Below, one piece after another: positions 3,871-63,130 of a stretch of 64,000 nucleotides of DNA. How positions within the stretch are numbered: position 1 is the first letter of the stretch; every line of letters starts with the position of its first letter. The DNA is taken from positions 12,028,001 to 12,092,000 of the forward strand of contig CM106586.1 in NCBI GenBank assembly GCA_048013815.1, given 5' to 3'. Origin of the DNA: Setoptus koraiensis (taxonomy: Eukaryota > Animalia > Arthropoda). A model generated the notes under the pieces. That model did no database searches and was not told the origin of the DNA. It saw only the letters and a program-made list of their open reading frames with translations. A program made the position numbers and the translations under genes.

Positions 3871-5011
3871 GGCCTGAAACAGGCCACAAATGAGCCCGCT
3901 TCAACTCAGGCGACGTAGAAGGCTCCGGCGAAGGATAGGCCGATCGCAATTAGGCAGCAAGGGCATGATTGTCGCTGCCGGCTCCACCAAACGGCCCGCT
4001 AAGACACTGTGATTGAAATGTTAGCCAATCACAAAATATTTGCATTGTGCGTAATTCTGTTTTGTTGTTTTAGGTTTGATGTTGCTTGCAGCAACTCTAC
4101 ACTAACAAGTAAAGTGTGTCTGTCAGGGCAGCACAGTTGTCTTTGACAGATGATGTAACCAAATGAAGGCACACCGTAAAGGAACAATGACACTGGCATT
4201 TCTCTCTCGCTCCTGTCTCATGCGGCATCACTCGTCGCCGCCAATGCATTGCGACTCACAATGCGCGTGGTTCTTTTCTCTCTCTTTCTCTCTCTGTCAT
4301 ATTCTGCTCTGACATGCCGTACAGTCGACTATCCGATACAGTACACAAACATTTTGTAAACTTCCAGTATTATGTAATGCACATGTAGTGTTTCAAGTGC
4401 ACAACTGTGTGTGATCAGAGCTCATTCCGAGCCACTAAAACAGTTTTGTGGCAGTGCAGCGACAAACGGATAACAACAATATTGCAGCGCCGAGCATCGT
4501 AATACTTGCGAAACGTTATAACGAAACCTATGTGTAGCCATAGACACCAATGGCAGCTCTCTATACATGTATATATATATATATCTCTATTTCTCTGGCT
4601 TTCACTGGCTGCTTGTTGTTGCGAATCGCTCACTATGTTTGCGATTGACTGACTGACTCATTTGCTCGTACAACAACACTGTCAGTGTTAGACGGCGAGG
4701 ATTACGCAATCGCAAAAGCATTCAAACTCACAAATTGCTGCAATGCAACAACAGCAGCAAATGGCCCTAGCAGTAGAAGTTTAGTTGCACAATCTGCCCC
4801 ACCGTCGCCATCACTACCGCAACTGGCACTACCACTACCACCGCCACCACTGCCTCTCCATCTACTACCGTGTATCGCGTTATGTAACTGTTGTAGTTGT
4901 TGTGTGAGCAGTAGTAGCTTGTGCCAGGTAGTATGTAGTCCATTCATGTGGCTTTTGTTCGGCTTAACATGTTGGTATACTAGGCGCTCACTCTCAGTGA
5001 AGCCTTGTACA

Positions 5012-5042
<31 letters not shown>

Positions 5043-5525
5043 GCGGCCCTCTTCGTATTGCATTATTTTCCTCGGAACAACTCTATGCACTCCATATTCG
5101 ACACAGTCTGTCTCTACTGGGCCCACAGTGACTTTTGTGCGCCGTGTGCAGTATTTGCACAAAATATTGATTCGAAAAGAACAGAGCGACGAGAATCACA
5201 GTTGATATTGGTGTGTCCTCAACAATTCACAGCCCGAAACAGAACAGATCACCACAAATTACGCACACACGAAACGCGCCCCCACGAATCAACACACTCG
5301 CTCACACTGTGTGTCACACTGGATATTATCATAGTCAGAGACCATCCTTTTTACCATCATTTCTTTTTTGTCATTATTTAAATTATATTATCTCATGGCA
5401 GTATAATTATACAAACACAATCACTTCACCTTGCAGTCGACGCATCGTTCGCCTCCATTCACAACACACTGCCACACAAAGGCCCACACCAACGACCACC
5501 ACCCATCAATCAGACACATTACGTA

Positions 5526-5560
<35 letters not shown>

Positions 5561-6394
5561 ATACCTTGTTACTGGCATTCACGTATTGTACCATTACAAC
5601 CATTCGTCGATTAGATAATTGAAAGGCCCTCTTCATTCGTCGTCCGAGGCAACGGCAAGAACAACCAGCGACAAGTTTTTTAAACCCAGCTTATCACCTA
5701 CTCCAATTGATTGTGTGTAGCAGTATTAATTAGCGACACATTTCTGATGTCTGATTCTGCTCTCAGACCATTGGTGTGTGTTTGCTAATTGGACTCACTA
5801 AATGACACTCACAACCTTTCTGAGTGGGTGATTCTTTGTACGGGTTGATATCAGCTCTGAAGTTCACATAATATGTTAACAATGCAATTTATTGGTAAAA
5901 TTCTCTTTCTCTATTCTGGTGGTGTGTTTACATGACATTTATAATTTGACAATCTTAACAGACCCTCGTAGGTGGTGAGCGCGTCAAAACTGAAGCGAGT
6001 GGCCAACGAGAAACGGGACAAGACAATTTGAGAATTTGATAAGAGAATGAGATCCTTGAGAAGGCAACATTGTTTCTCGGAATAACGAGCAAACGGTCAT
6101 TCAGTCGGTCAGCAGCGGATGTGCACGATCGCAAAGGTGAGCATTAGTCCCAACTGTCTCTCTGTTATCTAACTAGTATAACGTAAATATATAATAGTCA
6201 TAATAATAATAATATTAATAATAATAATTAATAATAATATTCCATAACATTAGGCCAAGGCGCGCTAGTAACGGGGCCTGTCCGTGTTCGTTGGGCTCCT
6301 CGCAGATAATAAAAACAATTAAACTAGTTTGTGTGTGTGTGTTTCCTGTTGCCACACTCCAAATTTTGTGCGTGTGGGTGTGAAACCAATTAGC

Positions 6395-6429
<35 letters not shown>

Positions 6430-6441
6430 TAGCTATACATA

Positions 6442-7157
6442 TTACAATTTTTTAACAAACACATATTTGTAATTGTCTAAAATGAACGCTGTGAAATAGT
6501 TGATACTGGCCGCCGACTCCAGTGTTAGGCCGTAATTTTTTGACCACAACAAATTGGGCCCGAAAACAATGGCCAAATTGGAGGCGGTCATCTTATTGAA
6601 GTCTTTCCTATCTAATATTTTAACCAAAAATTCAAATATAAACTTGAGCAGTTTATAATTATCATCTGGCAATCTCCTGGACACGATAGTTTTAGCTAAG
6701 TCCAATTTGGTGCTAGCGCCAGACGAGCTTGAGCTCGATGACGACCTGTTTTGTTTTGTGCAGTCGATTGTGTCATTGTTGTCGTTGTGTGCGTTGCTCG
6801 AGCCAAACGACTTAAACTCCAAAATATCCTGATAGAGGCCAAATGTCAAAAGGGGCTCCTCAAGTTCGCGTAGGAACGTCTTTAAGATGACAGCGGCCAC
6901 ATGAACGGCCTGTTCGCCGTATTCATCGAAATTAACCTCTTCGCCACTGTTGAACAATTCTTGGACAGTTTGAACAGTTTTTGTGTTGGCCGAACGCCTG
7001 AACAATCCCTCTGTTTGCATTGCGTTTTCGTTGCTCAAATAATCAATGGTGTGCTTAATGACTCTTGGTATGACATTTCCGTTGTTGTGATCCTTGATAA
7101 ATTTCAATGACACATGGAATTGTTGCGAATCAAGACGCCTGTGCCAAGTGGAAGAGG
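6442..7157 (-). CDS. ARHGAP1: ARHGAP1/Cdc42GAP (RhoGAP68F-like) exon 4: RhoGAP domain and stop
   Basis: QQFHVSL, TEGLFRRSA (arginine finger), AVILKTFLRELEEPLLTF and NKMTASNLAIVFGPNLLW. The only phase-compatible acceptor is AAAG at 7159-7158, so this boundary is the least certain. Confidence 0.88.
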
Positions 7158-7812
7158 CTTTTGAGGTGACATTGTTGGTGATGGCGGTTGAGGCAGTGCA
7201 AAGCGACGAGAGAATCATGGTTAGTTATGTAATAAGTAGTCTTAATTAAGTGTCTAAGGAATGTGTGTGTGTGTGAGTGTCGGCGGGACAAAAGTCGAAT
7301 GACTACCGACAGGCCAATTATGCAAATCATCACCAGTCTGCGATCACCGCCAGACGATTGGCCACAAATGGCTGGCTGCCCGGATAACACAATGATAATA
7401 TGCTGTTGTCGTCTCGATCGTTCAACCAGCTCCAGAGCAGACAGACAGACAGAGAAAGAGATCTTCCGCTCTCTTTCGACACACAAACCGCTCGACTTGG
7501 GACGAACGTAGCCAGTTAGGTATTGCACAAGATTGTTGAGATTGTTTGTATCAGTTGCGATCAATTGCAACCGCCCGCAACTTGCGTATGGCCCGATCAA
7601 TGTTATCTTGTTGTTGTTATCTTGTGATGTTGTTGTTGTTTGTGTGTAACACACACACACACACACACAATAACACAAAATAACACGAAATAACAAAATA
7701 ACAGGTTACGTAACAGGTCGACGAGACTGCAGTGAGGAGTGAGCTATAATAATAATAATAACGCGGCGATGAGACGAGGACAGGTCGACTTTTGAAGTTG
7801 AGAAATACTTAC

Positions 7813-7883
7813 GCTGTATCGCCGGCTTGCTGTACAGCCAGCTGGATTTTCTCTGTACCTGGTCCAGTAATCGCTTATCATGC
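7813..7883 (-). CDS. ARHGAP1: ARHGAP1 exon 3 (71 nt; (E)HDKRLLDQVQRKSSWLYSKPAIQ)
   Basis: Flanked by CTAATCTCTCAG and GTAAGT. Phases match exons 2 and 4, and splicing recreates VLEHD. Confidence 0.8.
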
Positions 7884-8878
7884 CTGAGAGATTAGTTTTA
7901 GTTTTTTGGTTTTTCAGTTTGTTGTGTGCATTTTGTGTTCCGTTTGGCGTCGCCGTCGTCGTGGTCGTCGTCGGTGTATCAAGTTGTTGTTGCCGGTCGT
8001 GCAGACACGACAAACAGCGACAGTGGACACAGGTCATTACGGTGCAGGTGGGGGAGTCGTTGTATCAAGGTTTAAAAAGGTTCAAGTGTGTGTTTGTTGA
8101 GCATTTTATTATTTGCATGTAGCCGGCCAGCGCCAGACGTTGCCAGATTAGATAGAGTCGGTAATAATTATACCAATGGTGTCCGGTAATCGTTGTTGTT
8201 GCAAGTGTCGAGATAGGAGATGGTGCGAGATTGTTTTCAAGATTGTTAGAGAGATATTGTCAGATCGCAGTTGTGTGAGTATTGTTGTTGTATTCATTGG
8301 AACGAGGCAATGAAGGGGAGAATTGATGCAAGCATGGCGATGCAATGCAATGAACAAAAACGAAACGAAACCAAACCAAATGAGACGACGAGAGGCAACG
8401 CGGCAGCGTCATTGTTGCGGTTGTGGTAATCGGCCGTTGTTGTTGGTTGGCCCAATGACAACAACGACAACAACCGAACGACGAGAATGAATCAATTAGA
8501 ATCAAAAAGAATCGGACACGAATGCACGGCATGATTGATATGGCGTGGGAGTGCAACTAACACAACGTGCTCAATGTCTAGCCAACGAGCGGTTGATCAG
8601 ATCAGAATCACCGACACTAACGAACAACAACAACGTCGCGCATTATATCACACGGATAACAATCTATCTGCTTGTTGTTGGCAGTGAAGTGGCAGCAACA
8701 CACTTGCGTCGGACAGATAATTAATGGTCACACTATTACGCAACAGCAAAGTACCGTTGTGATAGGCATGTTGCGTCCAATGGTGCGGGTTGCGCACCAA
8801 ACAAACATATGATTTGTTTATTGGAGCCATTAATCACACTTAATGGCTTCACCTGTGTCGTTGTAGTTGCTCTTAGTT

Positions 8879-8909
<31 letters not shown>

Positions 8910-9035
8910 CCATCACTACCAATAGCGATAAACTGATGTGAGCTGCGACTGCAACTGTCTTGTCAACATGCCCCGCAACACAAACTGAATTTACAGTTAG
9001 CTCAGGTGAGCTGGCAAGTGATCTTTTTTCGCTCA

Positions 9036-9085
9036 CCATGATTCGCCATGATTCGCTATTATTCACCATGGTTCACTATGATTCG
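9036..9085 (+). repeat. 10-bp minisatellite (CCATGATTCG)x5, degenerate, in ARHGAP1 intron 2
   Basis: ccatgattcg ccatgattcg ctattattca ccatggttca ctatgattcg. Confidence 0.75.
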
Positions 9086-11811
9086 GTCAACATGAGTTGC
9101 ACCACTATTGCAATTATTGCAAGCAGTAGTTGGCAGCCGATAAAGACAAAGACTCATTGCCGCTGCTACCACTGACCCTCACATAATCTCGTCGTCTAGT
9201 CCATATAGGCAAAGGTAACAACAACAGGTTGCTGCTGCTTTATCGGTGCTCCAATTGAAATCGAAATGTTCAATTGTGCGCTATTCTTTCTAGATGCAGT
9301 CTCTTCCTGATGATTACACACAACTCACATAGAGGAACACTTACAGTTACCTGGCTGCGATAACGGTTGCCACCATTACTTTCTTTTTAACTATTGCTGG
9401 TCACACACACTGGCACAGGTAGACAGCATTTTTTTTTCTCTTTCTCTCTCTCTCTCTCGCTTTCTATGAGACTTTCCAACCAACACACTGCTGTATACAG
9501 TTAAACGCTTTTCCAAACAATCTAACAGAAACAACAACGACAATAGCGCCGCTATAATGCTGCCGACACCAATAATAACAAGCGAATAACGAATAGAACG
9601 GCCTGAGAATGAGCAGTCAATCTGTGTATCTCTTTCGTTGTCTCAACCACAACAAGTGGTATCAGTGGTTGGTGCCACATAACAAAGTGAGACGCTGCAG
9701 GTAACGCTGCTGTCTTGATGTGACAAGTCATCATGATGATACAGCGGCGACCTGTCGCTGTTGTTGCCCACAATTGCGTTTCGGCTCAAAATAGACAGGC
9801 CCTATGAAAGCGTATCGAAGACGGTTACACTGCTGCTCTCTAGCTACAGGCCCAGATGGACGGCCGAAACTAAAAATGAGACACACTACGAAAGTGATCT
9901 CTGCCACAGAGAATTGATCTCTCTCTCTGGCAGAATTATTATCCAGCCAGATACAGCTAGCGGCGGCTACACTCAAGCTGACCAACTGACCCCAACCTGA
10001 TCATGATGCAGTCACTCAAATTGTGTTGGTGTGATGGTATCTTGATATCTCTTGACTGCACTCTCTGTTTATTGTCAATAATTGCCGAGTATGTGTGTTC
10101 AAGACGGCTGAGAAAAGAATCGTGATTAATCTCAAATTATGTTGAGAAGCAAAACACTCCATCCATGCTGCTACTCGTCAGATTATATCAGTTATGAGCA
10201 ACTGACCGCCGATCGCTTGACAGACAACAACAATGATAACACACACACACGTCAACGTTATCAATCATTTTGTCAATTACATAATAATAAAAATAAAAAA
10301 ATATCTAATAATACTAATGATAATAAAGAACAACGGACACTTGCACAATCATGTGGTCATATCCTCTACAATGGCCATACGACAATTGGCTAGCTGTTGG
10401 CCGGGTGTCAGATCAATTAACGCATAGCCAGGCATAAAAGAATTATGACCATGATGATGATGCAAATATCTGGCTATTCTTTATGATTGAAAGGCGATTG
10501 TTCTAGCCACTGTGTCCACACTATCCAATAATGGATTTGCACAACATGATTAGATCGTTACAGGTGATGGTACTCGAAGAGAATGCTCATTACATCATAT
10601 AGCCACACATAATGCTCTCTTGTCACTTTATGTGCATTGTCGCCACCGATAAAGTAACGAAAAGTTATACGAGAAAAGAAAAAGAATCCATCCAATGTTA
10701 CGTAACTTATTATGTTACGTAACTATTGGTGGTTTGAGTAGAATAACTAGAAATGCTGGTGGTTAAGAGCTCTGTGTCGACTGTTTGTGTGCCTATGTGG
10801 CACCAATCGATGATGATGGCGTTCTAGTTGGACTGCTCAAAAAGTACTTTAATGTCGCCATTGTTGTCTCTTTTCTTTTGACGTATTCTTTCGCAAGATT
10901 CTCTCTCTCTCTCTCTCTCTCTCTACCTCTCTTTTCATATTCTCGCTTCTTTTATAAAACCAATCGAGAGCAAAATGATGATTCAATGTGTAGCAGCCGG
11001 TATACGTCAGGTGAACAACGTACACTCTTATATAACATATAATATTACAAAAGCTACAAGTTGAATGACATTAAACTTGTCGGCCCAATCAATTTAGCAG
11101 TGCTGGTGGCTCTATTCACATTCACTGGTCAATGAACCTAGGTTTTCTGTTCAGAATCTTTTCATTTTCCTTATCCTTACAAATACAATAGCAATGAATG
11201 AGCAAGATAAGAAAAAGAAAAAAGAGTCTATATCTCAAACAACATGTTACATTATTAACGTATCATGGATTTTAAGATCATCGCCGTACCTCATATGCAT
11301 AATAGTTACATACGATGATACCAGCAACAATAATTGTGTTTCGGTCTTTTCAAGTCTACTTTAGTCAGTTATATGTGATGACAACAAACTCACAGCCATC
11401 AATTGTGTGGCAAATCAGAGTTTAATACGAAACATATATTGATTCTCTCTTGCCCTCTGTAATTGTAATGCTTTTAGTCATAATAATAGTAATAATTTAG
11501 TAATAATAATAACAAGTTTGTTTAGATGAGCACTATCAACAGCCAAATAAACTTATTATTAGCCTTATTCTGGGGCCGTTGTTTGATAAGCTACCTTCGA
11601 TCAATTGATAATCAGGCTAATGATAGCTTACATCTGCTTCAGCAACACAACAATAATACCGAAGAATATTGTCGACCAATGAGAAGAAACTCGGTGTCTA
11701 TTGTTGGAATGTCTCTCATTTAGCAACTTTGGCCAATAAACTAAGACCGTCATTTATCAAACAACAACTAAAGCTAGATTGCGACCATCAGACAATTAGA
11801 TTGGTACTCAC

Positions 11812-11910
11812 TCTAATACTTGTTTTGGTATGAGCAATTTCTCCAATTGCATATACTGTTCCAGTTCATTCAGATAATTGACATAGCGCATCTTGCGTCC
11901 AAACTTGATG
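11812..11910 (-). CDS. ARHGAP1: ARHGAP1 exon 2 (99 nt; (S)IKFGRKMRYVNYLNELEQYMQLEKLLIPKQVL)
   Basis: Flanked by TTTTAG and GTGAGT. Continues the BCH/CRAL-TRIO domain (KFGxKxxYVNYLxEL) in phase 2. Absent from the ORF track. Confidence 0.9.
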
Positions 11911-13009
11911 CTAAAATGAGTTCAGGTAACATTTATGCAACAGTTTCCAAGTGCCATTACAGGAGAACAACGGTTATCCAGTCCAGATGTAAGTGTTGAT
12001 GGATGGGTGGCAAAAAGAGCAAGAGTACACGTAAGAATGGTTAGTAAAAAAACGAGAGAGATATTTACACAGTTATTAGTATGAATATTAAAAGCGTTTA
12101 GCTGTATCAATAGCCCTGTGCCAGGCCTTCGTTCCAGGCTGTTATTAAAAATAGGAACTGACAAGTCGACAATTGTTCATTTTTATCACGGTCACTAATC
12201 ATTAAGGGCTGGCTCTATTTTGCGCCATAGTTAGTATTAAGCGCGCAACTTTTTACACACTTTGCATGATCAGGGACCAACAACAATTATTCACTAATTG
12301 ATGGCTAAATAGTTTTGTTTTTTCTTCGTGCGAAGCCTGTGGCCGCCATTACTAAAAAGTTACTAAATAGTTGTTTTCAACTGAATGGTATATTTCCACT
12401 GGCTCACCTCTCCGAAGTTTCAACCAACCTAGAGTTGGTTTCTTTTTGTCGTTCCTTTGTTTGTTTTGTTATTGTTGTTTTTGCGTATAATTTTCTCTTT
12501 AAAACTTGCTATCATGCAATTACTGGCGGTTAATCGTTTTTATTTCATTCTTTTATATCGTTGTCGCAATTTGTCGCATGTACGTTTGTCTCTCTGTCTC
12601 TCTCTCCCCATGTTTCTTTCCTTCCTTCCTCAAATTAAACTATCTGCAATTGTTGATTGCGTAAGAACAAGTATCTCTGCAACGATTAATTTCTCGCCAT
12701 CTCGCTGCACACGCTTCATGTTCGCCTGCAACGAATGAATTTTAATGCTCATTTGTTGTCTAATGGGCTCCAACAATAAAAAAAAACACAGCATTATTAT
12801 TCGATACACGAACTGGGCAGATATCTGTCTGGTTGCTAGGTGATCATTGGCTGTCATTTTGCATCGGCACCAGTGCCATGGCTGGTTCTTTATGGGTGCG
12901 ACACGAGTCTTTATGGTTTGATTTACTGTTAGTTTTAGAGGCTCGTACGTGCTGGCGAGCCCTCAACAAAAAAAAACGATACAAAAATGCTCATGAATAA
13001 ACAACTCAC

Positions 13010-13833
13010 CTGATGATGGGCTTGAACAATTGCCAAACAAAGCGTATGAAATTTGTTGGGTGGACTAGAAATAAGGCTTTGAGGTTTTTCTTGTATTTTC
13101 TATCGAAGGCTCTGTAGGCTTGATATAGAAAATTTAGTTTTGGTTTGTTTGAAGAATTGAGGCCATAATGGAAATAGACTACACAATAATCATTTTCAAC
13201 ATATTGGTTCAATGTGTACATGATGTAACGCAATAAACGATGATGATGTATTTTCTTATCTGAGGGCAAACGACAAGCGTAAATAGTTATGATACGCCGC
13301 CCAAATAAATCATCGCCTGCCACCTCAACAGTTCCATGTTGCGATATATCACTAAAATCTTCGTCTTGCATTGGAGTTTGACGTAACGCCTTGGCTAACT
13401 CATCTTGGCTTTCATCTGCCTGTTGGAATATATTTGATCTGAATGCTTCTTCAAAGTTTTCCTCTAATAAATCATTTGGTGAATCTAAATAAGGTGAACT
13501 AGTAGACGAGGAACCATCGCCGCTTATTAAATCAGTCTGGCCATTGTCAATATATAGATGTTCTATCTCTTCGGCAATCTCTTGTTTTAATTCTGAGTCA
13601 TCAAATTCCAAATTTGGCTCATAATCTAAACTCTGCAAATTTTGTTCATCCGAATGATAGCCATGACTGTCCATAATCGGGTGCCTAGCTAACATTCCAC
13701 CTTGGTGATGATTTTGTGTGGCGGTGGTTGTTGTTGCTGTTGTGCTAGCATTGTTATTTTCTTTTGGATTTTTATCAAAACTGTTATTGTTGTTGTTCAA
13801 TTTAACAACTTTATCACATCTAGACTTATCCAT
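13010..13833 (-). CDS. ARHGAP1: ARHGAP1 exon 1: acidic N-terminus and BCH (Sec14-like) domain; full protein about 569 aa
   Basis: [27 protein letters not shown] and [17 protein letters not shown]. Donor AG|GTGAGT at 13010/13009. Confidence 0.92.
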
Positions 13834-15278
13834 AATAGAGCGGTGTTGTTAATCTTGTTCTTGTTTTATCTTGTTGACTATATAGTGGAAAATTTAAATT
13901 TCAGAGGCCACAATAATTTAGCTAATAATTACAGACAATTATTGACCATTGGACGGATGGATTGATATCTTTTTAAGAGCACAGGTGACAATACAATTAA
14001 CGATCCTGTTGCACGTAAGCATATGTTGGTGTTGTTGTTGTTGGATCGAAGTGAGCTGATGTGTGTATCATTTCGTTGCCAATATTTGCGAACAAGAAGT
14101 GACGAGGCAATAGAAGGTGCCTTATAGTTCATATCATGTCGCACAATGCCGAATCATATTTTATAACAATAATAATATTTGATGATAATAATATTATGTG
14201 ATAATAATAATACCAATGGCAATGGTAATAATAACAGTGGTGCTCATACCAGTATTGCAATGCCGTGAGATGCTTCTGAATTTCGGCTATTATCCGATGT
14301 CACAGTATTTGTGTTGTTGTTTTCTCATTTGCCTCTGTGTGTGTGTGTGTTTTTTTGTAATAAAGCCGAACCAAAGCAGACCGATGAAACCCGAGTTGGA
14401 TGTTGAAGAGAGGCCCTATGATGGCTGTTGTGACACTTGTTGTTGTGGTGTTGATATTCAATTATATATTGCATAAGAGTTGGCTGGTTCAATGTTAATT
14501 GATATGGTTATTATTTTGAACTTATAAGTGCTGGTGGACAGCAACAACATGCCGATTGATTAATATCAAGACGATTCCAGTGATTACCACAATATAATGT
14601 TATGAATAGGGTGTTGTTATGCCAATAAGTTGCCTTCTTGGCAGCTTACTATCATTATGTTCGTTGTCTTGCTTTAGACAAATACAGGCTTTTGGCTCGT
14701 TGGACCAGCAGGTGGAAGAATATTGCTATTGGACATGGAGATAGCAATGTTGGCTGCAAAAATTAAGCCACAACTTGACAATAAACTCAATCTATGACTA
14801 ATGATGGCTTGACGACAATGTTACACTGTGGACAATTAGTTAGCGCTTGAGTATCCCAATATGAGATAGGAAATTCACTAGTTGTGATGATTGTTACACT
14901 AGTATGTAGACATGTTTCAACCAACAACGAATAGCCAATGGACTGACATGATAACAAGAATTGAATGAACTAGCAACAAACTAACAAACACGGGACATGA
15001 TCAACCAAGCAAGCTCAAAAATATACGCTAGACACCTCCTTCTTCTATTCACATTGTTATGTTGCGATGAATATAATATTCTAATGCTACGACTACCATG
15101 AATCCAACAACTACCACTAACAACAACAGCAAATCCATTCGGCCAGAACACTCTTGATTACCTGGGCTCACCTAGCCCAAACAGATAGGAAAATAATTCT
15201 AGCAGAGTGACTGTGAACTTTCACCATCACATTGTGCGAGGGCTGGTCGTCGTTGTCGTCGTCGTCGCACAGGTGACG

Positions 15279-15280
<2 letters not shown>

Positions 15281-15338
<58 letters not shown>
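15281..15338 (+). repeat. (AC)29 microsatellite
   Basis: Perfect dinucleotide run read directly. Confidence 0.95.
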
Positions 15339-15339
<1 letters not shown>

Positions 15340-15582
15340 ATGCGCCTATAAACTGGCTTTTTTACACTTAAGAGACATAGAATAACGACGACAACAATAA
15401 CAACAGCCACAACGACGACGACAACTGCGAAAACAACAACGGCAAGAGTAGGCCAACTTTTCCTACTTCTTCTCCAGAAAATTCGGGCGGACCTATTATG
15501 TCAATAAACTTGCAGTATAGATAGCTATCGCTAATAAGAGTTACGACACACACGGACACAGTTGTCATGGATACATGCTACC

Positions 15583-27912: not shown

Positions 27913-28381
27913 AATGGCTAGAGGCTATGAGGTTTATGTTAATAGTATTGTTACACTAATGATTGCTAAATAAAACTAAAATAAAATGGTCAAATATTCC
28001 AAATTTGTGTAATAATAAAATGATCCAATATATCTCATTCCAAATTAGAGTTATCTGTTGTGTGTTATTGCTTGCAATCAATGTATAGTGCGCGTGTGTT
28101 TGTTTGTATTAGTGCAAATCAAATAAGCATCTAATAATTTGAGTTTAATTGTATTTGTCGGATAATTCAAAACGATTTTAATAATAATTAATTATCTATC
28201 TATGGCGTTTGTGTGTGTAGACATTACACCATTGCTTGAAGCCGATCCGCAATTGTATACAATGTGTACATAGGCAGCATTACACCACCATGGCCTATTG
28301 AGAGAATGTGTAAATTACGCTGTGCCAGTAGAAACGCGTGTTCACAAATGTGTTTGCGCTTATAAACAAACAAAAGCACTA

Positions 28382-28799: not shown

Positions 28800-29292
28800 T
28801 AAAAAAAAGAAGAAAGCGTTGCACCGTGCACTCTTTGGCGCTAACACCACCAAATCGCTACACAAGCACCCGCTCTCTGGACAAAATTGGCCCGTTTGGC
28901 GCGTTTGTGCTGTTGTCTAAAATTAGTGCCAACTTTGCTAGCATTTGATCTGCAGAAGGTACGCCCCAGATTCTGCAAAATCATGTCCAACATCGTGGGC
29001 CTCATTAAATGAAAGTGCGCGCGATCTTCTATCGGTAGCGCCACTTTTAAAATCTAATGGATCACATTCACCTGGGCAGGTTAGAGTAAATGTTGCTTCT
29101 CGAAATTCTATCCTACTGTGAATATGTTTCTGAATTCCCAGGATGGGAGAAGGTATCACACAACTATAATCTTGTGAGACATTATCTCGTTATTTAGTTA
29201 TCAAAATCGGAAGTTGGATAAAGAAATAAAAAAGTTCGAACAATGATTCACGACACGTTTGATTCGCATTCGAATGAAAAGTTTATTGAAGC

Positions 29293-34257: not shown

Positions 34258-34284
34258 GATTACATCCCTAGCTATAATTTAACA

Positions 34285-39595: not shown

Positions 39596-39927
39596 CCAAA
39601 TTATCCGCATAAAACCAAATATAAATATCAGATCAACACCATCGAATCGAATCAAATACAAATATCTCGACTACAAATCAATCGGTCAGAGGAGCAGCAC
39701 GAGAGGGCCGATTGCGAAAACAGTGCTAACATTTTATTGGCGATATTCGAGCATTATTTACATATAACTGTGCTGTTGTTTTGTGTGATACAAATTCAAA
39801 AGAAAACAACAAACAAAAACATTCCGTGCCAGCGTCACGCTAACGTGACAGCGCCAGTCCCATGTGATAGATTATATTGTTCATTTTGCAATTTGTAGGC
39901 ACCTTTCCTTTCACAGCTATCACACCA

Positions 39928-40006
39928 TTAACGGTAGTAAGATTGGCCTCCATGAGAAGAGTACGATTGTTGCTGGTAGTAGACTGGTTGAGTTTGTTTC
40001 AGGATT
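39928..40006 (-). CDS. Probable exon 2 of a small secreted peptide ((P)ILKQTQPVYYQQQSYSSHGGQSYYR*)
   Basis: Acceptor CAAACAG at 40008-40007 is phase-compatible with exon 1. An alternative acceptor at 40087-40086 would end the protein PFI*. Confidence 0.45.
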
Positions 40007-40158
40007 CTGTTTGTTTGTATTGTTTTATAATGTTGGGGGATTCGAAGCAACAGTGTGAAATGAAAGAAGGAGATATCAGATGAATCTGTTGTATTGGGTG
40101 ATCGTATTTGCAAAACAAAAAAAGAAATCAAATATCTAAAATCGATGTCAAAACTTAC

Positions 40159-40352
40159 GGTATGGGCAACGGAATTGGAAACGGAAGTACTATTTTCTTG
40201 CCGCCGTGAAGCAGTAGAGCGGCCATGAGTGCCTTCTTTTTGAGCGCCTTCTTCCAGCCGGCCTCTACGCCTGTTTGTTTGTATGACATTAGGGTGGCCA
40301 TGACAATCAATGTCACAAGAGCTAGAGCTGATGCAGTTCTGATGATCTTCAT
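40159..40352 (-). CDS. Exon 1 of a small secreted peptide (signal peptide + KKALKKKALMAALLLHGGKKIVLPFPIPLPIP)
   Basis: ATG in a caaaATG context; signal-peptide-like N-terminus. The apparent stop overlaps a perfect donor CC|GTAAGT at 40159/40158. Confidence 0.65.
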
Positions 40353-40814
40353 TTTGATGCTGGTTGTTGTGCGTTGCTGTTGCTTGCTTTATTTGGAGTG
40401 ATACGCTGATGAATACTAATAAGCTGGTTGGTTGGTTTGTTGACTTTGAATTTTCTTGCTTGCTTGCTTGCTTTATTTATTATTATTCTTATCAACTCGC
40501 GAGTGAGTGCTTGTCGCTCAAGGTTCACCTGACAAATGCAGATAAACCCTTTACTGTCCCGCTTGTTTATACTCGTTTTGCGGACAAAACCAGCCAGCGA
40601 GCTTGCCAACCAGCACTACACACTGCTCACCTGTGTGGTGCTGGTCAGCGGGCAAATTGTGTCCGGCGGAGGGCGTCAATAACAAGAGCGCAATAGCAAA
40701 CGGTAGTGGTAGCTAGTCCAGTTTTTGTGTGCCTACTGGCCAGAGCTACACACACACGCACACACACACACACGCTGATACAGCTTGTGAAAGTTGTGCA
40801 AATCGACCAAGAAT

Positions 40815-40897
40815 ACAGCAACGGCAACAACGACAACGGCAACAACGACAACGGCAACAACGACACCGACAACGACAACAGCAAAAGCGACAACAAG
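40815..40897 (+). repeat. Imperfect (CAA/CGA/CGG)n trinucleotide tract
   Basis: acagcaacggcaacaacgacaacggc... read directly. Confidence 0.8.
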
Positions 40898-41320
40898 TTG
40901 CGTCAAGCACATCCTTCTCATTATACAATTACGCGTCGGCCAGACAGATCGGCCGTTATTATGATTGTTACCGCAAGCTAGCCAAGACGAGTTGAGTCGA
41001 CCAATCAACATCACCAAATCATCATTATTGCTTGTGTTTGTGTGTTGCCATGTTGGCCTTGCCACAATCAGCTGTTGGTCGCCGGTTGGCGGCGAGTTGT
41101 GGTTTCAATTGAGCTGGCCAATTGTGTCTGTGGCCAGCGATGGCGAGTGTCAGTTTGTTTATTTGTTGTTGTTGTTGTTTACTGGTCTCACGATGCTAAC
41201 GATAGTTTGTTTGTTTGCGCGCGCGACAGCCAGCAACAAACATCGGACATGACACATCAGCTGATTGGCGGAAGCGCACAACAGAAATGGCGCCAGTTTT
41301 TTAAGTGAAACAACATTGTG

Positions 41321-41392
41321 CAACAACAGCAACAGCAACAACAGCAACAACAGCAACAGCAACAACAACAGCAACAGCAACAACAGCAACAA
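41321..41392 (+). repeat. (CAA/CAG)n trinucleotide tract
   Basis: About 24 triplets. Source of the spurious poly-L, poly-C and poly-N ORFs in the track. Confidence 0.9.
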
Positions 41393-42729
41393 CGGCGACG
41401 GAAACACAAGTGTGCGTACCCAATGGGTAACACAAACATATATTATGTAATATGTAACATATATTATGTATCGGAATGAAGGGGGCGAGCGCGACTGTTT
41501 CCGATTATCAATTTGATCTTCATCATGACCTGCGCGCATTATCATAACTAACATTGGTCATCAATCTTGGCACCGCTATTTGCGATGCGTCGTGGCGGCG
41601 GTTGTTGGTGTTGTTGTCGTTGTTGGTGTTGTTGCCGTTGTTGTCGTTGTTGTCGTTGTTGCCGTTGTTGTTGCGGCGGTCGGCTCGCTTTCGAAGGCAG
41701 GTCAGGCGAACAAACAAGCGATCATGACCAGTTTCGCTTCTTCACGCCGTGCTCGATGTGTGCGTTCGAAGCGGATCGATACGGTTCTTTTCTGAGCCGT
41801 TCCCATTCGCAACACATTGCTATCAGTGTTGTTTGGCTACCGGCGTTGCATTGCTATTAGCCGAATAGCAAACCGAATAGTATTCGGTTTGCGCTGCCAA
41901 TTGGCGCAACACGAACCGATCAAACACCCCAACAATCTCTCCGGCGAGCTAGCTGTTCGGAGAGCCATTTGTTTGTCTTGTCACATAGCGAGGGCCATAA
42001 ATCACCTTTTATCGCAGGCATGCGCCCAGATAAAGGCAACAGGCGGCAGCTGCGAGCGGCAACCTGTTGCAACCATTACACAATTAGACAATCACAGCTG
42101 AACAATGTGGCACACTCATTGATCATCGTGAGCAAACAAACAACATTGTTTACATTCATGTGCCACTTGTTTGTCTGCCCGTTACTCCGCCCGTCGCCCG
42201 TTAACTGCCCGTTGCCCGTTGTCTGCCCGTCGCCCGTTTGTCGTGGCAAGCTGGGCCGGGCCGGCCGGGTATGTGTCATATGCGCTCACGTCCGCGACAC
42301 ATCGATCAATTGGCTCGCATCGTGGTCACGCCGTCATGATGACGGGGCTCGCATGCTCGCGTGATCAGCGCGCTCGTCATCGTCGCGGTGGTCGGGCCTT
42401 GCAGCGAGACACGATTAATACCGGCCTAATATCCGCGAAATATCAACCGCTATTAGTGTGATTACCATCATTGCCGGCCTAATGGCGGCACCGTTGGCCT
42501 AACAGGCCGGCCGTTGGCTGGCCAGTGGCCAGTGGTTGTTGTCTAGACACGGTTAGCGATGGACGTGAGGCTGCTACAAGTTGCGTTTCCTTCATTTACA
42601 CAAACACACACAGTGAATTTGAAGTCGCTCATTTAAATTCAATTTGTTGTTTGGTCGATGGCGTCACCTCGCTAATCGTCGTTTATCGGTCGCTTTTATT
42701 TTGTCTTGGTTCGTTTGTTGTTGATAAAC

Positions 42730-42776
42730 GCCGTTTATGCCGTTTATGCCGTTTATGCCGTTTATGCCGTTTATGC
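42730..42776 (+). repeat. 9-bp minisatellite (GCCGTTTAT)x5
   Basis: Five perfect units. Confidence 0.9.
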
Positions 42777-44139
42777 GGGCCCTCGATAACTGTCTCGATT
42801 ATACGATTACAACAGGTACCTGTTACAGAACGGTTACATAACGGTTATATTGTGCACGATATGTGTGGTTTGTAGTGAGCCTCGGGCGCCAATAATCGGC
42901 GCCATCAAATCGGCTGTTCAAAAGTGTGACAAGCCAACATTTGACTTGACGCAACTTGACCAGTTGCGCACTGCATGCAACTGGCGCTCGGCCGAGGTGA
43001 GACTGAACAAGATCAACCACTGACTGCATCATCATATCACATGATGCAATCACATTCAGTGGCGCCTCAACCGATGATAGGCGATGCACTGACTAACTGA
43101 TCGCTAATTAGGCGGCTGATGGTCGACGGGCCAATTAGTTGGCTGGTGGCAGCGGCCATCAATTGGCAGCTCGCAGTTGGCACGCTCGATTCGCATTCAA
43201 TTGGCTTCTCGCAATTTGTCAGGTGAGATTGTCAGGTGAACTTAGCAAATTGGCGCGCACGCCAACCGAGCGGACAATTGAGCCAACGCTGGCCAGACGG
43301 ACGGCCGGACAAGCAGCCGGACAAGCGGCCAGCCGGACAGGCAGACAGAGCTGCCGGCGAGACGGCAACAAATGTCTGGACGGTGCGCAGATTGTTCCGA
43401 TTGTGGCGCTGTCGGCGCTGACGGTGGTGGTCAGCATCAGTCGCCGGTCGTTGGTCGCCGGCCGGAAGCCGCACAACTGTGCCGGCGATGGTGCCGGTGA
43501 ACTTGAGCGGCGCCGGCCCGGCATCAGCACTGTTGGGCATTCTGTTCGCCTGTTGGCTGTGTTGCCAATGTTGCGCCATTTGAGCATAATTCGAGTTGCT
43601 CGACCGGCGATTGGCAACTCAAACTATCAAACTGCGAATTGTTGCCGTGAGTCACCCACAGCGAGTGTGTGTGTGTGTGGGCACATTTTGGCCAGCATGC
43701 AATCAGTTGATGTCAGTGTTGGCCTGTTGGCCGGTTGTTGGGCGCCGCAACAACAACAACAAACGCAACAATCAGTGCCAACCGACGACAACAAACTGTA
43801 ACTAATTGTTGCCTGGTGCACTGCCGAGACCCGACGCCGGAAGTGGAGCCGCATCCCCGTGTGAGAGCTGCATGTGAGCCGCATGTGTCAGATACATTGT
43901 ATCTGATGCGAGCGTCAGTGTGAGGCGGATGCAGTGGCGAGGGCCCACTCAAGGCTGTTGGCAGCGTCGGTGGTTGGTGGTGCCACCAAGCTCGGCCAGA
44001 TGATGGCCAGACGAGACGAGAAAGTGATTCCGTTATTTGTTATTTGCATCGCGCGCACATCGTTTGTTTGTACAAGCGACCGTTGGCGTTGGCGACCGCA
44101 ACACCGGCAACACAATGCGAACATCCCATGTGAACAACA

Positions 44140-44257
44140 TCATCATCACCATCAGCAACAACGACAACAACGCCAACAACAGCAACGACAACAGCATCAG
44201 CAACGACAACAACATCAGCAACGACAACAACATCAGCAACGACAGCAACGACAACGG
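44140..44257 (+). repeat. Imperfect (CAA/CAG/CGA/CAT)n tract with an 18-bp higher-order period
   Basis: caacgacaacaacatcag repeated. Confidence 0.8.
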
Positions 44258-44426
44258 TAGCAGTGGGCATAATGCGGCCACTTGTGGCTTATTCAGCTCG
44301 TAGCCAAGTGCTCTTATTAAGCTGTGAACGAAGAGAGAACGACGGCGACCAATAGGACGACGACGAATAAGTTAGTGAGTGGCCGCTATTAATCAACGTT
44401 TCCGTTAGCTGATGCCGGCCACTGCA

Positions 44427-44468
44427 ATTACGTAATGTGTGTGTGTATACACACACACATTACGTAAT
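44427..44468. repeat. Perfect 42-bp palindrome
   Basis: attacgtaat-gtgtgtgtgt-at-acacacacac-attacgtaat equals its own reverse complement. Confidence 0.9.
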
Positions 44469-45059
44469 GCATTACAAACAGCAAACAAGCAACTGTTACA
44501 GTGCAACAGGTGAGTGTTTGTTGTTGTCGACAGGATGCGTCTGGCAACTTGTGAGCCACAAGTGAGCGCATCAAGGTGAATCCTGTCTGTCGGGCCAACA
44601 ACATATGCAGCCTGTTAATCACACAGGCTGTGTGAATACAGTTGATACAGGCGAGCACAAGCGACTGCCAGTGTACAAGTCATATTTACAAGTGTCACTG
44701 ACTGAAAATAAAGTGGCTAATAAAATTGAATAATGATGCGATGAGAAAGTGGACCCACTTGACGGCTTCCTCGTCCCGCAAGCCCGACTGTGTGCCCGGT
44801 TGTACTTGTGCCAGTCCTGTCCTGTCCACTGTTGCCAGCAGCGAGTTGGCCAGCCACACTTGGGTGCAACACGACAGGGGCCACATCAACGAGAGCAGTT
44901 GGCATTGGCACGGTCGTGATTAGCAGCGGTCAATTGGCGTTTCGTGAGAACAACGCGGCAGCAACAACAACAACAACAACAACAAACAATGGCTAATCTG
45001 CTCATTGGCCGCTGTGTCGCCCTTGTTCGGCCGGCTGCCCCGGCGAGTCGGCCCACTGA

Positions 45060-45094
45060 CACCTGTGCACCTGTACACCTGTACACCTGTGCAC
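45060..45094 (+). repeat. 8-bp tandem (CACCTGTR)x4 containing E-boxes
   Basis: cacctgtg cacctgta cacctgta cacctgtg cac. Confidence 0.85.
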
Positions 45095-45896
45095 AATAAT
45101 TAACTGTCTGCCATAATTAACTGGGATAATAATAAACAACAAGGAAGAGTCGTGACGACAACATTTGCGCCAATCATTGTGTGCCGGCATTTGCATCAAT
45201 GCACTTGTTAATACTCGTACCTGCTGCATATAATATACGCATAATATACGCAGTGTATGCTGGCTACTGGCCTGCCGGGCTCGAGCGGGTGTCGGTCAGT
45301 GGGACAGTTACACACGGGCTGCACAGAGTTACATAACACGGTTGTGGTTGCGGTGGCGGGCGCCGCCACCGCAGCCAATGCCAAATGCACACAAACAATC
45401 GGTGCAGCAGCAATTGGTTCAGCAATCAAATTGATGCAATCAATGCCAATTCAATGGCATCCCATGCCCATTATGTAATGACCGGCATTGCATAATACGC
45501 ATGCATCATTCACAGGTGAATTGTCAGCGCAGTGCAGCTGTGTACCGAGTGGCCTTGTTAGTCATATGTATGTGTATGTCAGTATGTAATGTATAACGGC
45601 TTTATACGACTAACGGGGCACAGGTTGCATGACAAGGCACAAGATTCATATAAGGCATCATGGCGTATGATTCGCAGGCATGATTCGTAGGCATGATTCG
45701 TAGGCATGTCAAGCTGTGGTCAGCCAGTTGCGACACTCAAGCGGCACATCAACTGGAGATCAACTTGAGTGAGTTGGCGGTGACAATTTGTGGCGCTCTC
45801 GCTGACAAATTGTCACTGTCACTGTCGTATTGTTGTCGCTCATACGGCCAATTACAGCAACAGCGAGCGAGCAACAGCGGCGGCCATTGTTGGCCA

Positions 45897-45951
45897 GTCG
45901 TAACACAGTCGTAACACGGTCGTAATGCGGTCGTAATGCGGTCGTAATGCG
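45897..45951 (+). repeat. 11-bp minisatellite (GTCGTAAYRCR)x5
   Basis: gtcgtaacaca gtcgtaacacg (gtcgtaatgcg)x3. Confidence 0.85.
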
Positions 45952-46500
45952 GTTGCGGTGCAATTGTGATGCGGTTGTTGAGCAGTTGTCACACGGTTTT
46001 GAGTGACTGTTGGTGGGTCGGCCGAGCCAACTGTCAACGCGATCATGGGCACTCTCTCTCTCGCTCTCTCCGTGTGCGATATGTCACCGAATGCGAAAAG
46101 TCTGTGTCGAATCGATCGACAGAGGGCAAAAATCAAGAGCGGCGATGAAAAAAGATGAACAACGACGAGCGGCATCTGGTGCCAGTTAGACAGTGAGACA
46201 GCGGGTCGGACACGGTGCACAAGAGCGGCTAAAAGCGGATGAGGGTGGGCGCTGTTGAAATGTAAATGTGATGATGACAGGTTAAAACAATTTAAAACGG
46301 TCTAAAAAGTCGGTCAGTTTTGTCGGGTACGTCTGGCCATGATTCGCCGCCTGCCATGAATGATTGCGTCTGGATATTTGGCGATGCGGGTGGCTGGCGG
46401 GCTGGCGAGCGGTCGGTGCGGCTGGTGGGCGGTCAGTCGGTGCGGCTGGCGGGCGGTCAGTCGGTGCGGCTGGCTGGCTGGCTGGCGGGCGGGCGAGCGG

Positions 46501-46836
46501 TCAGTCGCGCTCGCTCAGCGCATAAGACTCCATGTGACTCTTGTAAAATTGTTGTATCCTCGTGTCCGGCCAGGCGAGTTTCATTATGAACAAACCGAGC
46601 CGGTATAACAGCATGGCGCCAGCGCAGGCGCAAACCAAAAACGGGCCACTCTGCCACCAGGTGAGCTTCTCGAACAACGGATAGGGCCAAATGGTGAGGT
46701 AATTGCCCAAGAACAGCAGCCAGCTTAGGTAGGCCGTTATGAATATCGCTATGGTGATTAGGTGCGTTCGCACGGACAGCACCCGGTGGTGGCAGCACAC
46801 GATCTCGGCCAGAATGATGGGCGCGATGACGGTGTG
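46501..46836 (-). CDS. AIG1/ADTRP (FAR-17a) family multipass protein, exon 2
   Basis: Acceptor GAAAAG at 46838-46837, phase 0. HTVIAPIILAEI...AYLSWLLF...WPYPLFEKL...*. Splicing creates QHLQHT, matching the family HxxHT motif. Confidence 0.88.
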   Translation of the reverse strand, partial: HTVIAPIILAEIVCCHHRVLSVRTHLITIAIFITAYLSWLLFLGNYLTIWPYPLFEKLTWWQSGPFLVCACAGAMLLYRLGLFIMKLAWPDTRIQQFYKSHMESYALSERD

Positions 46837-47010
46837 CTTTTCGGCGTTGCGCGTCGTTTACGAGTTTATGAGATTACATGATGATACGATATTATGTGAT
46901 ATTGCGTTGGTCAGTTATTATGTCATTTATTGTGTCATTGTTGCGCCAATGTTATGAAGCGATATTAGTCAATATTACATCACGTGATTATTGCGCTGTT
47001 AGCGACTCAC

Positions 47011-47862
47011 CTGTAGGTGCTGCACGTACATGGGCGTGGCGCGGCGCAGCTCGGGCGACGCGATCGCGTCCACGTCGATCAGGTATATGGACCAGAACAT
47101 AATGGTGACGAAGGTGCCTATTGGGTAGGCGAGGGCAGTGATGATGTTGTCGCGCAAGTCGAACAGTTTACCCGTGAGCCGGCGCGGGCCGGCGGGCTCG
47201 TCGGCGAGCTTCGTGGACGAGGACGAGGCCGCTGCGGTTTGGTCCAGTTGAATGGAATTGCGGCTCAGCGAGCGCGTTTTCACCGACTGGCTCGATTGGG
47301 CCGCCGACGACGCCGAAACGAAATTTGACTGTTGATCGGCGGCGGCGGCGTCGCAAGATCGCGAATAGTTTTGGGCCAAACAATCGCACGCCAGACACAG
47401 GCAAAATGTGAGCCATTGTATCCAAATGTCCCAATAGGTGAGGAATTTCCACGGGCCGGGAAATTCGGCCAGCCGGTCGGATTTGTATCTGAGGTATATG
47501 TCGCGCACTATGAGAAAGGTGTAAATACAAACGGCTGTCATATGCAACAAAATGCCACTTGTTCGCCACACGAGCCATATCAGGTGTTTGGGTGCCATTG
47601 CGGTGTTGCGGCCAAAGCGGTGTGTTTGGGCTGTCGATGTTGACGTTTGTGATGTCGATGTTGGTGATGTCAATGTTTGTGATGTTTGTGTTGTTGCGGT
47701 TGTTGGGGCATTTGTTGTTGTCGTTTGTTTGTGTCGCCTCTGTGTCCGTTGCTGCTGCTGCTGGCTCGACGCCGGCCGCCTGTTGACAATGTTGACAGTG
47801 TCGCTCGTCACAACAGTGTCGCTGGTGCTGGCGTGCGTTTTTCGGCCTAGCGAGACAGGCAT
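47011..47862 (-). CDS. AIG1/ADTRP family protein, exon 1 (up to 395 aa total; start codon uncertain)
   Basis: FPGPWKFLTYWDIWIQ (conserved Thr) and LAYPIGTFVTIMFWSIYLID. Donor CAG|GTGAGT at 47011/47010; 174-nt intron. The start could instead be the downstream MAPKH. Confidence 0.85.
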
Positions 47863-49166
47863 TCAGTTGGTGTTCAGCTCGTCGCTCTCCTTGGGCGCCC
47901 TTTGTGACACGGCGAGATAAATAGCGAGGATAATTGATACACTTGTCGCAATTGTTGTCGCTATCAGCATGCGATTATTACTGCTGTGCTGTGCTGCTAT
48001 CACAATGTTGCCTGCTGGCTCGAGTGGCGGCGTGCTGCGGGCTCGTTGTGGCGCGGCTTTTTGCGCGACCGGCCGCAACCGGCTGCAACGGCAACCACGC
48101 TCGCTCCGACCGCCAGCCGTCTAGCCGGCGGAGTCTCGCCGGCAGAGTCTGGCCGCCAGTGCGAGCGCCAGAGCCGCGCAGACACTCGGCAAATCGCAAA
48201 CAGACTGTAATTGTGAGGCGCTGATAAAAGTGCTGATAATATAAATACAAATACAAACATCGAGTGTGCTCATTATTTGCCTACCCGTGATACACAGTCG
48301 GCACTGGAGCGTCTGCATTGCAGACCCACCAGACTGTAGCACGCCGGCGTCGATGCATATCGCGCCGCCTATCAATGCGATCGACATTTGAACAACAATC
48401 GTCGTCATATGATCGACTCTTGGCAAGACTCCGGCTTGCCAACAGCGGCTTGCCACAGGCGGCTGTGCCAACGGCGCACGACAATCATGCCAAAACGATT
48501 AAAATCAATAGGCGGGCTGCGCAGCTATCGCACGTCATGAATGGATGCTCAGATGCATATCTAGCGATTTGTTGTCCCAAGCAGCGAGCATCAATACCAT
48601 TCAATCAATTCAGCGATTCAGTGGCGCCGCCACTCAAACTCATGCGCGGCACCGCGCATGAGTTTGCCTGCACCGCGCGCACGCCAGCGAAACATGATAC
48701 TAGCTTGCCAGCCGCCGGCCGGCGCGCTGCCTCGCCGGACCGTCGGGCCGTCGGGTCGTCGGGCCGCCGGGCCGCCGATCGGTCGCATTATCCGGCGTCG
48801 GGCGGGCCCCACGTTGGCGTGTGCGCCTCGTTGGCGTGTGCGCCTCGTCGCGAGCGGGCTGGCGAGGCGCAGGGCCGGCGGCCTGTTTGCCCTGGTGGCG
48901 GCGTCAGCGCGGCCGGACTTGCGACCGGCGCAGCGCCAACCGCAAACCGTCCGTGGCTGGGCCAGCGGCGTCGGGCCAGCGGCACTGGCACGGGCACGAC
49001 GGGGGCGACATGGGCGCACAATCAAACGGCCAAACATCTTGGGCCCGCCGACACAGCCGACATAGTCGACAGTCTAGACCCGCCGACACACAGCTGACAC
49101 GACGGTCGCTCATGAATAACCGGCCCGATATGCAGCGCGACGCGCGGGCAACACGCAGCGCCGTAC

Positions 49167-49222
49167 TCACAGCGCCAGACTAACGGCGCCATATTCACAG
49201 CGCCAGACTCACGGCGCCATAT
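49167..49222 (+). repeat. 28-bp tandem duplication
   Basis: tcacagcgccagact(a/c)acggcgccatat x2. Confidence 0.8.
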
Positions 49223-50565
49223 TCACAGGCGACGGAGTCGACGGTGACATAAGCACACAATGATAAATACACGCGCGTAATAAATGTACGCGCGCATGTT
49301 ATGTAATGTTATGTAACAGCGACAACTATGGCCACTGTGTCACAGTGACTGTGTGACAAGTGTGGCGCTAGATAAGCTGCTGCAATAACGCGCGCCAGAG
49401 AGATTGCCCGACCCAACGAACGGCTCTCTCCAAACTTGATGGCCACCAAGTGACAACAATGACTCGTGCTGTGTGCCCAACAAACAGGTGATACCGACAC
49501 ACAATGACAAACTGGGTCACTTGCCACTGTTACGCCTGCACTGCCTACATAATAAGTACAGCTGTACCCATGATATCAGCCCATTGTGCTGGCACCCTGA
49601 TCAGCTGACTGATCGGCCCACTGTGCCTTGCATTGCTGTGATTTGCAGCTCGTTACATAACTCATTACCATTGTCGCTGTTGTTGTTGTTGTTGTTGTTG
49701 TTGCTCACTCACTCACTTACCGTGAGTGAGTGGTAATAATAACGTGAGTGACTTACGTTATTATGTGCAGTACTGTGCAACGTTACGTAACGCGTCAGCA
49801 CGCGCCAACTGTGAGCCACTTCGATACAATCAATTATCGCTAATAACGAGACGCGACACTTTCGAGAGTCAGAGTTGTTAACCTTTAATTATACTCTCAT
49901 TATGCTCGCAGCTCGCAACTCGCAACTCATTGCGCATTACTAAATAAACTGTGAGCAACAACAGCTCACAGTTGGCAGTTGGCAGTGGCGAGCTTGGCGC
50001 GCGACATTGGCACGCATTTCATTCGCATGATCATTGCGCGGCTGGCCAGGTGATTTTTAATTGCAAACGGCACACTTGTACGAGGCTCACTTGTCGCCCA
50101 TACGCCCACTCACCTGTTAATGACACGATGACAGCACTCACGACGCTTAGCAGCACTCGATACGCTCACACTTGTCAGTGTCCGGGCGTCCAGTCCACTC
50201 TTGGCCCGATCGAAAGGGCGCACCATTTGTCGCTGTGTGTCTCGCTTGTTGTCGCTTTGGCTCGATGCGAGCACTGTGGACAAAAAATCTCGCCACAACT
50301 CGCACTCAGGGCCCCCAGCCGCGTCTCGCCGCTGATTGCATGCCGTGATGCCGTTGATTGTGGGGCCCGTCGAAAGCGACCCGCGACACAACAAGTCACG
50401 AAGCGTGATCCGTGTCGCTGGTGTCGTGCAACCATGCTCTGGCTCGTGTCTCGATCGCTGGCTGGCCAGTTGCACGGGCTTCGAATCAATTCAATTCGGC
50501 GTCGCTAATGGTCGCTCGTTTGTTTAGATGCGTGTGTGTGTTGTTTGTCGTTGTTAATCGCTCTA

Positions 50566-63128: not shown

Positions 63129-63130
63129 CG

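Follow-up and report, generated by a model that had tools for sequence, protein, structure and literature searches.

The DNA analyzed here is a 64-kb stretch of the genome of the mite Setoptus koraiensis (contig CM106586.1, positions 12,028,001 to 12,092,000; this whole stretch of 64,000 nucleotides is referred to as the window), in which the D-box decamer RTTAYGTAAY, the consensus word of the PAR and NFIL3 classes of basic leucine zipper (bZIP) proteins, occurs 18 times in two long non-coding domains. The genome is compact and intron-poor, in our reading that of an eriophyoid (gall) mite, and its assembly into two ~24-Mb contigs agrees with the two chromosomes of eriophyoid mites. TBL1/ebi (1058-2968, minus strand) is followed by the first domain (2969-15582), within which lies an ARHGAP1-like gene, likewise on the minus strand, with a CRAL-TRIO exon at 13006-13833, a small exon at ~11811-11921 and a RhoGAP exon at 6442-7218. 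The small exon completes the CRAL-TRIO domain and divides an apparent 5.8-kb intron into introns of ~1.1 kb and ~4.6 kb. A housekeeping block at 15.6-39.6 kb encodes a galactosyltransferase, a zf-C3Hc3H protein, LRR, TBC and acyl-CoA-synthetase-like proteins, eIF3c, RPL6 and, at its end, NPC1 (35534-39595, plus strand). The second domain (39596-53392, GC content 51.6%) contains only the small AIG1 gene (46501-47862, minus strand, 5′ end at ~47862), and is followed by an F-BAR/SH3 gene (53393-57262) and a MAM/LDLa gene (57806-61693), both on the plus strand. The names TBL1/ebi, ARHGAP1-like and AIG1 given in the original prediction hold. Rfam and tRNA scans found no Rfam family and no tRNA in the window, hence none in either domain.

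An exact pattern search recovered all 18 sites at the starts previously listed, including their division into CG- and TG-centered forms and three close pairs. Seven sites carry the palindromic word RTTACGTAAY (starts 5518, 7705, 10697, 10714, 44427, 44459 and 49782), and 11 carry RTTATGTAAY on one strand (starts 4369, 4879, 7224, 10276, 41442, 42833, 45328, 45470, 49298, 49308 and 49652). The resulting 25 strand matches compare with 1.31 ± 1.24 (largest 6) in 100 dinucleotide shuffles of the window and with 1.0-4.6 expected from Markov models of order 0-5 fitted to it, the higher orders of which take up the motif itself, so that the predicted excess over chance is confirmed and a compositional or higher-order background artefact is rejected. 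Every site lies within 4369-10723 or 41442-49791. The pattern is absent from 10724-41441, leaving the gene-dense 24-kb block between the domains without a single site as had been claimed, and from all DNA after 49791. The first domain accounts for 12 strand matches (0.3-0.4 expected) and the second for 13 (~0.2 expected), and locally the excess amounts to 30-60-fold. Microsatellite words aside, TTACGTAA is the most over-represented 8-mer of the window.

Within the first domain, three sites (4369, 4879 and 5518) occupy 4369-5527, in the intergenic DNA that separates the ARHGAP1-like gene (3′ end) from TBL1/ebi (5′ end), together with a hybrid RTTGCGTAAY decamer at 4701 and an RTTGCACAAY word at 4784. 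Five further sites (7224, 7705, 10276, 10697 and 10714) extend over 7224-10723, which we assign to the second, ~4.6-kb intron of the ARHGAP1-like gene on the basis of CRAL-TRIO and RhoGAP exons lying on one strand, and the second hybrid decamer of the window, at 8735, falls into the same intron. In the second domain, six sites (41442, 42833, 44427, 44459, 45328 and 45470) are distributed over 41442-45479, a convergent intergenic region of 47-55% GC flanked by NPC1 and AIG1, both with their 3′ ends toward it, with C/EBP-like variants at 41315 and 45487. Upstream of AIG1, four sites (49298, 49308, 49652 and 49782) are packed into 494 bp (49298-49791, GC ~55%) of the divergent intergenic region that separates it from the F-BAR/SH3 gene. 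The gene-free DNA at 42000-52000 has a GC content of 50-57% compared with ~40% in coding DNA, which encodes N/Q/T-rich low-complexity tracts, an inversion of the usual contrast.

The three close pairs differ in construction: the members of the direct pair 10697/10714 are separated by 7 bp, 44427/44459 and the (GT)n/(AC)n stretch between them make up a perfect 42-bp palindrome (44427-44468), and the sites at 49298 and 49308 abut. Both R..Y flanks are present on 18 of the 21 TTAYGTAA cores of the window, and in 16 of the 18 sites these flanks are symmetric (A..T or G..C). This symmetry is partly due to two duplicated pairs and is otherwise unexplained. The existence of two dimer specificities, one for A..T and one for G..C flanks, was considered and rejected, as mixed flanks make up 46% of sites genome-wide compared with 50% expected.

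The same decamer is in excess throughout the genome. Using the pattern read backwards as control, we counted 8820 strand matches in 48.76 Mb compared with 1356 for the reversed word, a 6.5-fold enrichment; the reversed word itself occurs just as often as expected by chance. Along 1.18 Mb of contig 1, the span of the first 100 forward-strand positions listed, 64-kb windows contain on average 5.3 and at most 16 forward matches, and the 14 forward matches of the window studied here are reached by 4.3% of them, placing it at about the 95th percentile. Two 100-kb genome samples contain 9 and 22 strand matches; per kb of DNA outside open reading frames (ORFs) this corresponds to 0.12 and 0.22 sites compared with ~0.54 in the window, the two domains being 2.5-4.5 times denser in D-boxes than the non-coding DNA of these samples. 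Clusters of a comparable kind occur several times per Mb genome-wide, with site densities derived from 264 kb of sequence and the first 100 genome positions listed. Confinement of the enrichment to the two domains therefore holds inside the window and does not extend to the genome; conversely, the motif is common genome-wide, yet it is not equally frequent in all non-coding DNA. The two domains are rich examples of a genome-wide class and nothing singular. Literature searches on the motif words yielded no published report of an excess of D-box decamers in mites.

Several properties of this excess suggest that the words are selected for protein binding. The TTAYGTAA core alone occurs 13493 times genome-wide compared with 5551 in the reversed control, but after subtraction of the decamers the remaining cores number 4673 versus 4195 (1.1-fold), and therefore the entire excess resides in the full published consensus. 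Accordingly, 65% of cores carry both R..Y flanks compared with 24% in the control. In a one-mismatch spectrum of 264 kb, the only enriched mismatches are known alternative half-sites of this bZIP class, namely TTGC (14 versus 2 and 19 versus 3) and TGAC (11 versus 2), and flank mismatches show no enrichment. Among centers of RTTNNNNAAY, those enriched are ACGT, ATGT/ACAT, GCGC and GCGT/ACGC. TTACGTAA and GTTACGTA head the 8-mer ranking of an independent 200-kb sample and, microsatellite words aside, that of the window. ORFs of at least 200 amino acids starting with ATG hold only one of 41 sites, despite covering 34-48% of the sequence, and fourteen gene-centered 3-kb loci (44 kb in total) contain no match at all. 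A coding or codon artefact is thus rejected.

The D-box excess is part of a wider excess of C/EBP/PAR-class decamers. Genome-wide, RTTGCGCAAY, the palindromic C/EBP word, is found 5640 times compared with 222 for its control (25-fold) and the hybrid RTTGCGTAAY 3188 times compared with 315 (10-fold), both enrichments exceeding that of the D-box itself. D-box, C/EBP and hybrid decamers co-cluster within 1-5 kb in a genome sample (sample B, L011-L020), where the D-box sites likewise reside in DNA of 50-60% GC. The window holds no copy of RTTGCGCAAY, of which the genome averages ~3.7 per 64 kb, and only the two hybrids mentioned above, so that its fields are nearly pure D-box. The presence of D-boxes without the C/EBP palindrome is unusual and favors a reader able to tell TTAC half-sites from TTGC ones.

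To identify proteins capable of reading these words, we searched the genome with the bZIP_2 profile and obtained 14 loci. Two of these are the likeliest readers: L021 (contig 2, 3.445 Mb) encodes an N-terminal bZIP of NFIL3/Vrille type, and L023 (C1:16651167-16651328; contig 1, 16.65 Mb) lies in a 187-aa ORF whose bZIP, of PAR/Giant type, is C-terminal. For both, the best match is the human NFIL3 bZIP in complex with TTACGTAA DNA (8K86; E 7e-20 and 3e-11, respectively), and both retain all seven residues (R80, N83, N84, A86, A87, S90 and R91) through which NFIL3 contacts bases (PMC10941009). The identification of the word as the PAR-bZIP/NFIL3 decamer is borne out, and matching proteins are encoded. 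Pdp1, giant or a lineage-specific gene are candidate orthologs of L023; Pdp1 was not found in the published Aculops lycopersici analysis. Two more loci, L022 and L024, encode C/EBP-type basic regions (N-x-x-A-V). NFIL3 binds TTACGTAA ~19 times better than TTGCGCAA, whereas C/EBP alpha and beta bind both words, TTACGTAA at least as well as TTGCGCAA (PMC10941009).

An association of the sites with circadian programs, raised in the original prediction, is not borne out. A domain search of the 48.8-Mb genome gave no match to FAD_binding_7 (cryptochrome/photolyase), and a genome search returned a single TIMELESS-family gene (C2:22099202-22100026), which we infer to be timeout and not timeless. In the genome of the eriophyoid A. 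lycopersici, vrille, Clock and cycle are present and period, timeless, cryptochrome and Pdp1 are absent (PMC7738191), and the missing cryptochrome/photolyase domain and lone TIMELESS-family gene of S. koraiensis, where period was not searched for, are consistent with the loss of the canonical clock reported in that mite. A clock-output role of the D-boxes is unlikely because of these findings.

We propose, with a probability of about 0.7, that the decamers are clustered, selected sites for Vrille/NFIL3-like and PAR-like bZIP dimers that act on nearby transcription, with binding, activity and targets predicted from the sequence. The 18 decamers would be bound with high affinity by dimers from the C/EBP-related class of bZIP proteins reading TTAC|GTAA half-sites, most likely those of the Vrille/NFIL3-type protein L021 and of the small L023 protein with its C-terminal, PAR/Giant-like bZIP. 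Selection would maintain them in long, putatively regulatory non-coding domains, here the ARHGAP1-like intron and the DNA flanking AIG1 on both sides. Activator and repressor dimers may compete at the clustered sites and so set the level of transcription of nearby genes, and small local duplications would be a frequent origin of new sites. The two domains are two instances of a genome-wide class, the ~8800 strand matches of which lie in DNA free of genes and often rich in GC, in most cases together with C/EBP and hybrid decamers.

Four observations weigh against this proposal. The genome averages 11.6 D-box strand matches per 64 kb and the window has only ~2.2 times as many, which leaves no tie between the sites and the named neighbor genes; the earlier suggestion that they control TBL1, ARHGAP1 or AIG1 finds no support, as nothing links them to any particular neighbor. 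Two of the window's pairs are recent local duplicates and hence do not count as independent events. TTACGTAA is bound by C/EBP proteins as well as by NFIL3 (PMC10941009), and therefore the sequence alone does not single out the reader protein. Finally, the TBL1 loci of five other eriophyoid-like genomes (79 kb), that of Fragariocoptes setiger among them, contain one strand match compared with seven in the control, a comparison of low power given that these loci are gene-dense, non-syntenic and distant.

A rival view is that C/EBP-class bZIPs (L022 and L024) or mixed dimers, and not Vrille/PAR-type proteins, are the main readers of what would be a single vocabulary. The 25-fold and 10-fold enrichments of C/EBP and hybrid decamers, the co-clustering of all three classes in sample B, the affinity of C/EBP alpha and beta for TTACGTAA and the two encoded C/EBP-type basic regions all fit this view. 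However, the window combines 18 D-boxes with zero C/EBP palindromes against a mean of ~3.7, as expected of a reader that separates TTAC from TTGC as NFIL3 does (~19-fold), and 11 of the 18 sites are TG-centered, which is the form of classical E4BP4/PAR sites; we consider C/EBP-type proteins unlikely to be the principal readers. Even less probable, in our judgment, is that bZIP-bound decamers serve chromatin architecture, as boundaries, tethers or licensing elements for open chromatin, instead of gene-specific enhancers. Sheer numbers (~8800 D-box, 5640 C/EBP and 3188 hybrid strand matches in 48.8 Mb), the position of the fields in long, gene-free and GC-rich blocks and the reduced transcription-factor repertoire of the published eriophyoid genome, that of A. 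lycopersici (PMC7738191), would suit such a function. Yet the sites occur throughout both domains of the window, the edges of which show no positional regularity, and the papers searched describe no known architectural role for bZIP proteins of this kind.

Neutral turnover through micro-duplication, minisatellite slippage, palindrome-forming repair or an unrecognized mobile element, entailing no regulatory role, would account for the pairs: genome-wide, 438 close pairs (gap 0-30 bp) compare with 10 in the control and ~25 expected under independence, many of them being short tandem duplications with periods of 14-20 bp, and of the three pairs in the window two (10697/10714 and 49298/49308) are direct duplicates, the third (44427/44459) being a perfect palindrome. 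These pairs suggest that small tandem duplications are a source of new sites. Duplication does not account for the ~6000 dispersed single sites, however, nor for an excess that is restricted to the exact protein consensus including the R..Y flanks and missing from the core alone, for a mismatch spectrum that tracks the known half-site alternatives of bZIP proteins, or for the avoidance of coding DNA. When the 200-bp flanks of 41 sites were compared by blastn, matches were limited to overlapping neighbors and CAA-type low complexity. Flanks are therefore unique beyond the motif, an origin from dispersed repeats or miniature inverted-repeat transposable elements is rejected, and the copies do not belong to one dispersed repeat family; neutral turnover as the whole explanation is highly improbable. 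Selected sites for Vrille/NFIL3- and PAR-like dimers remain the explanation we prefer.

A broader and more speculative possibility, which we regard as rather doubtful, is that one small bZIP clade (C/EBP, NFIL3/Vrille and PAR-like) is a dominant genome-wide reader of regulatory DNA in this mite, perhaps in eriophyoids generally, and forms a clock-independent, general layer of licensing or repression and no gene-specific switch. The three decamer classes total ~17,600 strand matches, enriched 6.5-25-fold; under this scenario they would gather in the small number of long non-coding domains that streamlining of the genome has spared.

Comparison with relatives is limited by the divergence of gene order. 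By TBL1, the closest relative is Fragariocoptes setiger, with 89% identity in the WD40 portion; Aceria tosichella reaches 82%. In F. setiger (L035, contig JAIFTH010000368.1) the neighbors of TBL1 differ from those in the window, and consequently no orthologous non-coding DNA was aligned. In the other eriophyoid-like assemblies TBL1 stands beside yet different genes (EMP24, HLH/E2F/TTL, HECT and more); these mites do not share a gene order around it. In F. setiger each of the four bZIP-type 8-mer cores has R..Y flanks, a weak hint of the same site grammar.

Other words and segments of the window were also inspected. CAGGTGAG, considered as a co-enriched E-box, was rejected in this role: its enrichment, one of the strongest for any word in the genome, stems from its being the 5′ splice-donor consensus, and it stands at exon ends of the ARHGAP1-like gene (13005) and of AIG1 (47006). 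Further copies inside the domains designated non-coding, at 40626(-), 50109(-), 43220(+), 44507(+) and 9003(+), may mark unannotated, possibly non-coding exons; the copy near 50.1 kb, for example, would belong to a 5′ exon of AIG1. An apparent enrichment of TTCGAA/GAAATTCG/GAAGTTCG words among the 8-mers of the window is due to a tandem array at 63100-64000, composed of ~110-140-bp units rich in these words. Inside the housekeeping block, the 4.4 kb at 24900-29300 contain neither a D-box nor any ORF other than one of 238 amino acids (27196-27912, minus strand), which has no match in Pfam.

Taken alone the window matters little, being one more field of a genome-wide motif beside genes without an obvious common theme. 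At the level of the genome, a perfect-consensus word in 6.5-fold excess, accompanied by a C/EBP sibling in 25-fold excess and enriched solely as the full consensus, constitutes an unusually clean signal of selected sites for an animal. This miniature genome would offer a convenient system for the organization of a bZIP regulatory code, and could help to show what a Vrille-type factor does in an animal apparently devoid of a canonical clock.

Motif and factor class are already known, and the locus adds another example. The mite decamers share with the D-box, or V/P-box, systems of DBP/HLF/TEF and Pdp1 and of E4BP4/NFIL3/Vrille an identical 10-bp consensus including the R and Y flanks, with TG- and CG-centered versions in use in both, and cognate bZIPs with all base-contact residues of NFIL3 are encoded here too (PMC10941009). 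The D-box is the element at which DBP and E4BP4 compete (PMC6687812). In vertebrates and flies it is best known for clock output, unlike in this mite with its lack of a cryptochrome/photolyase domain match and its one TIMELESS-family gene; the density of mite sites is also far above the needs of a few clock-controlled promoters, and most of them lie in introns and gene-free blocks instead of promoters. C/EBP sites (RTTGCGYAAY) and hybrid sites have the decamer frame and the R..Y flanks in common with D-boxes, and co-cluster with them elsewhere in the genome. As in homotypic binding-site clusters of animal enhancers, many copies of one motif, some in close pairs, are gathered here in non-coding stretches of a few kb, at a density well above that of the other non-coding DNA sampled from this genome. 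Such clusters usually mix weak and strong sites, whereas the mite fields, as putative enhancers, consist of perfect-consensus decamers.

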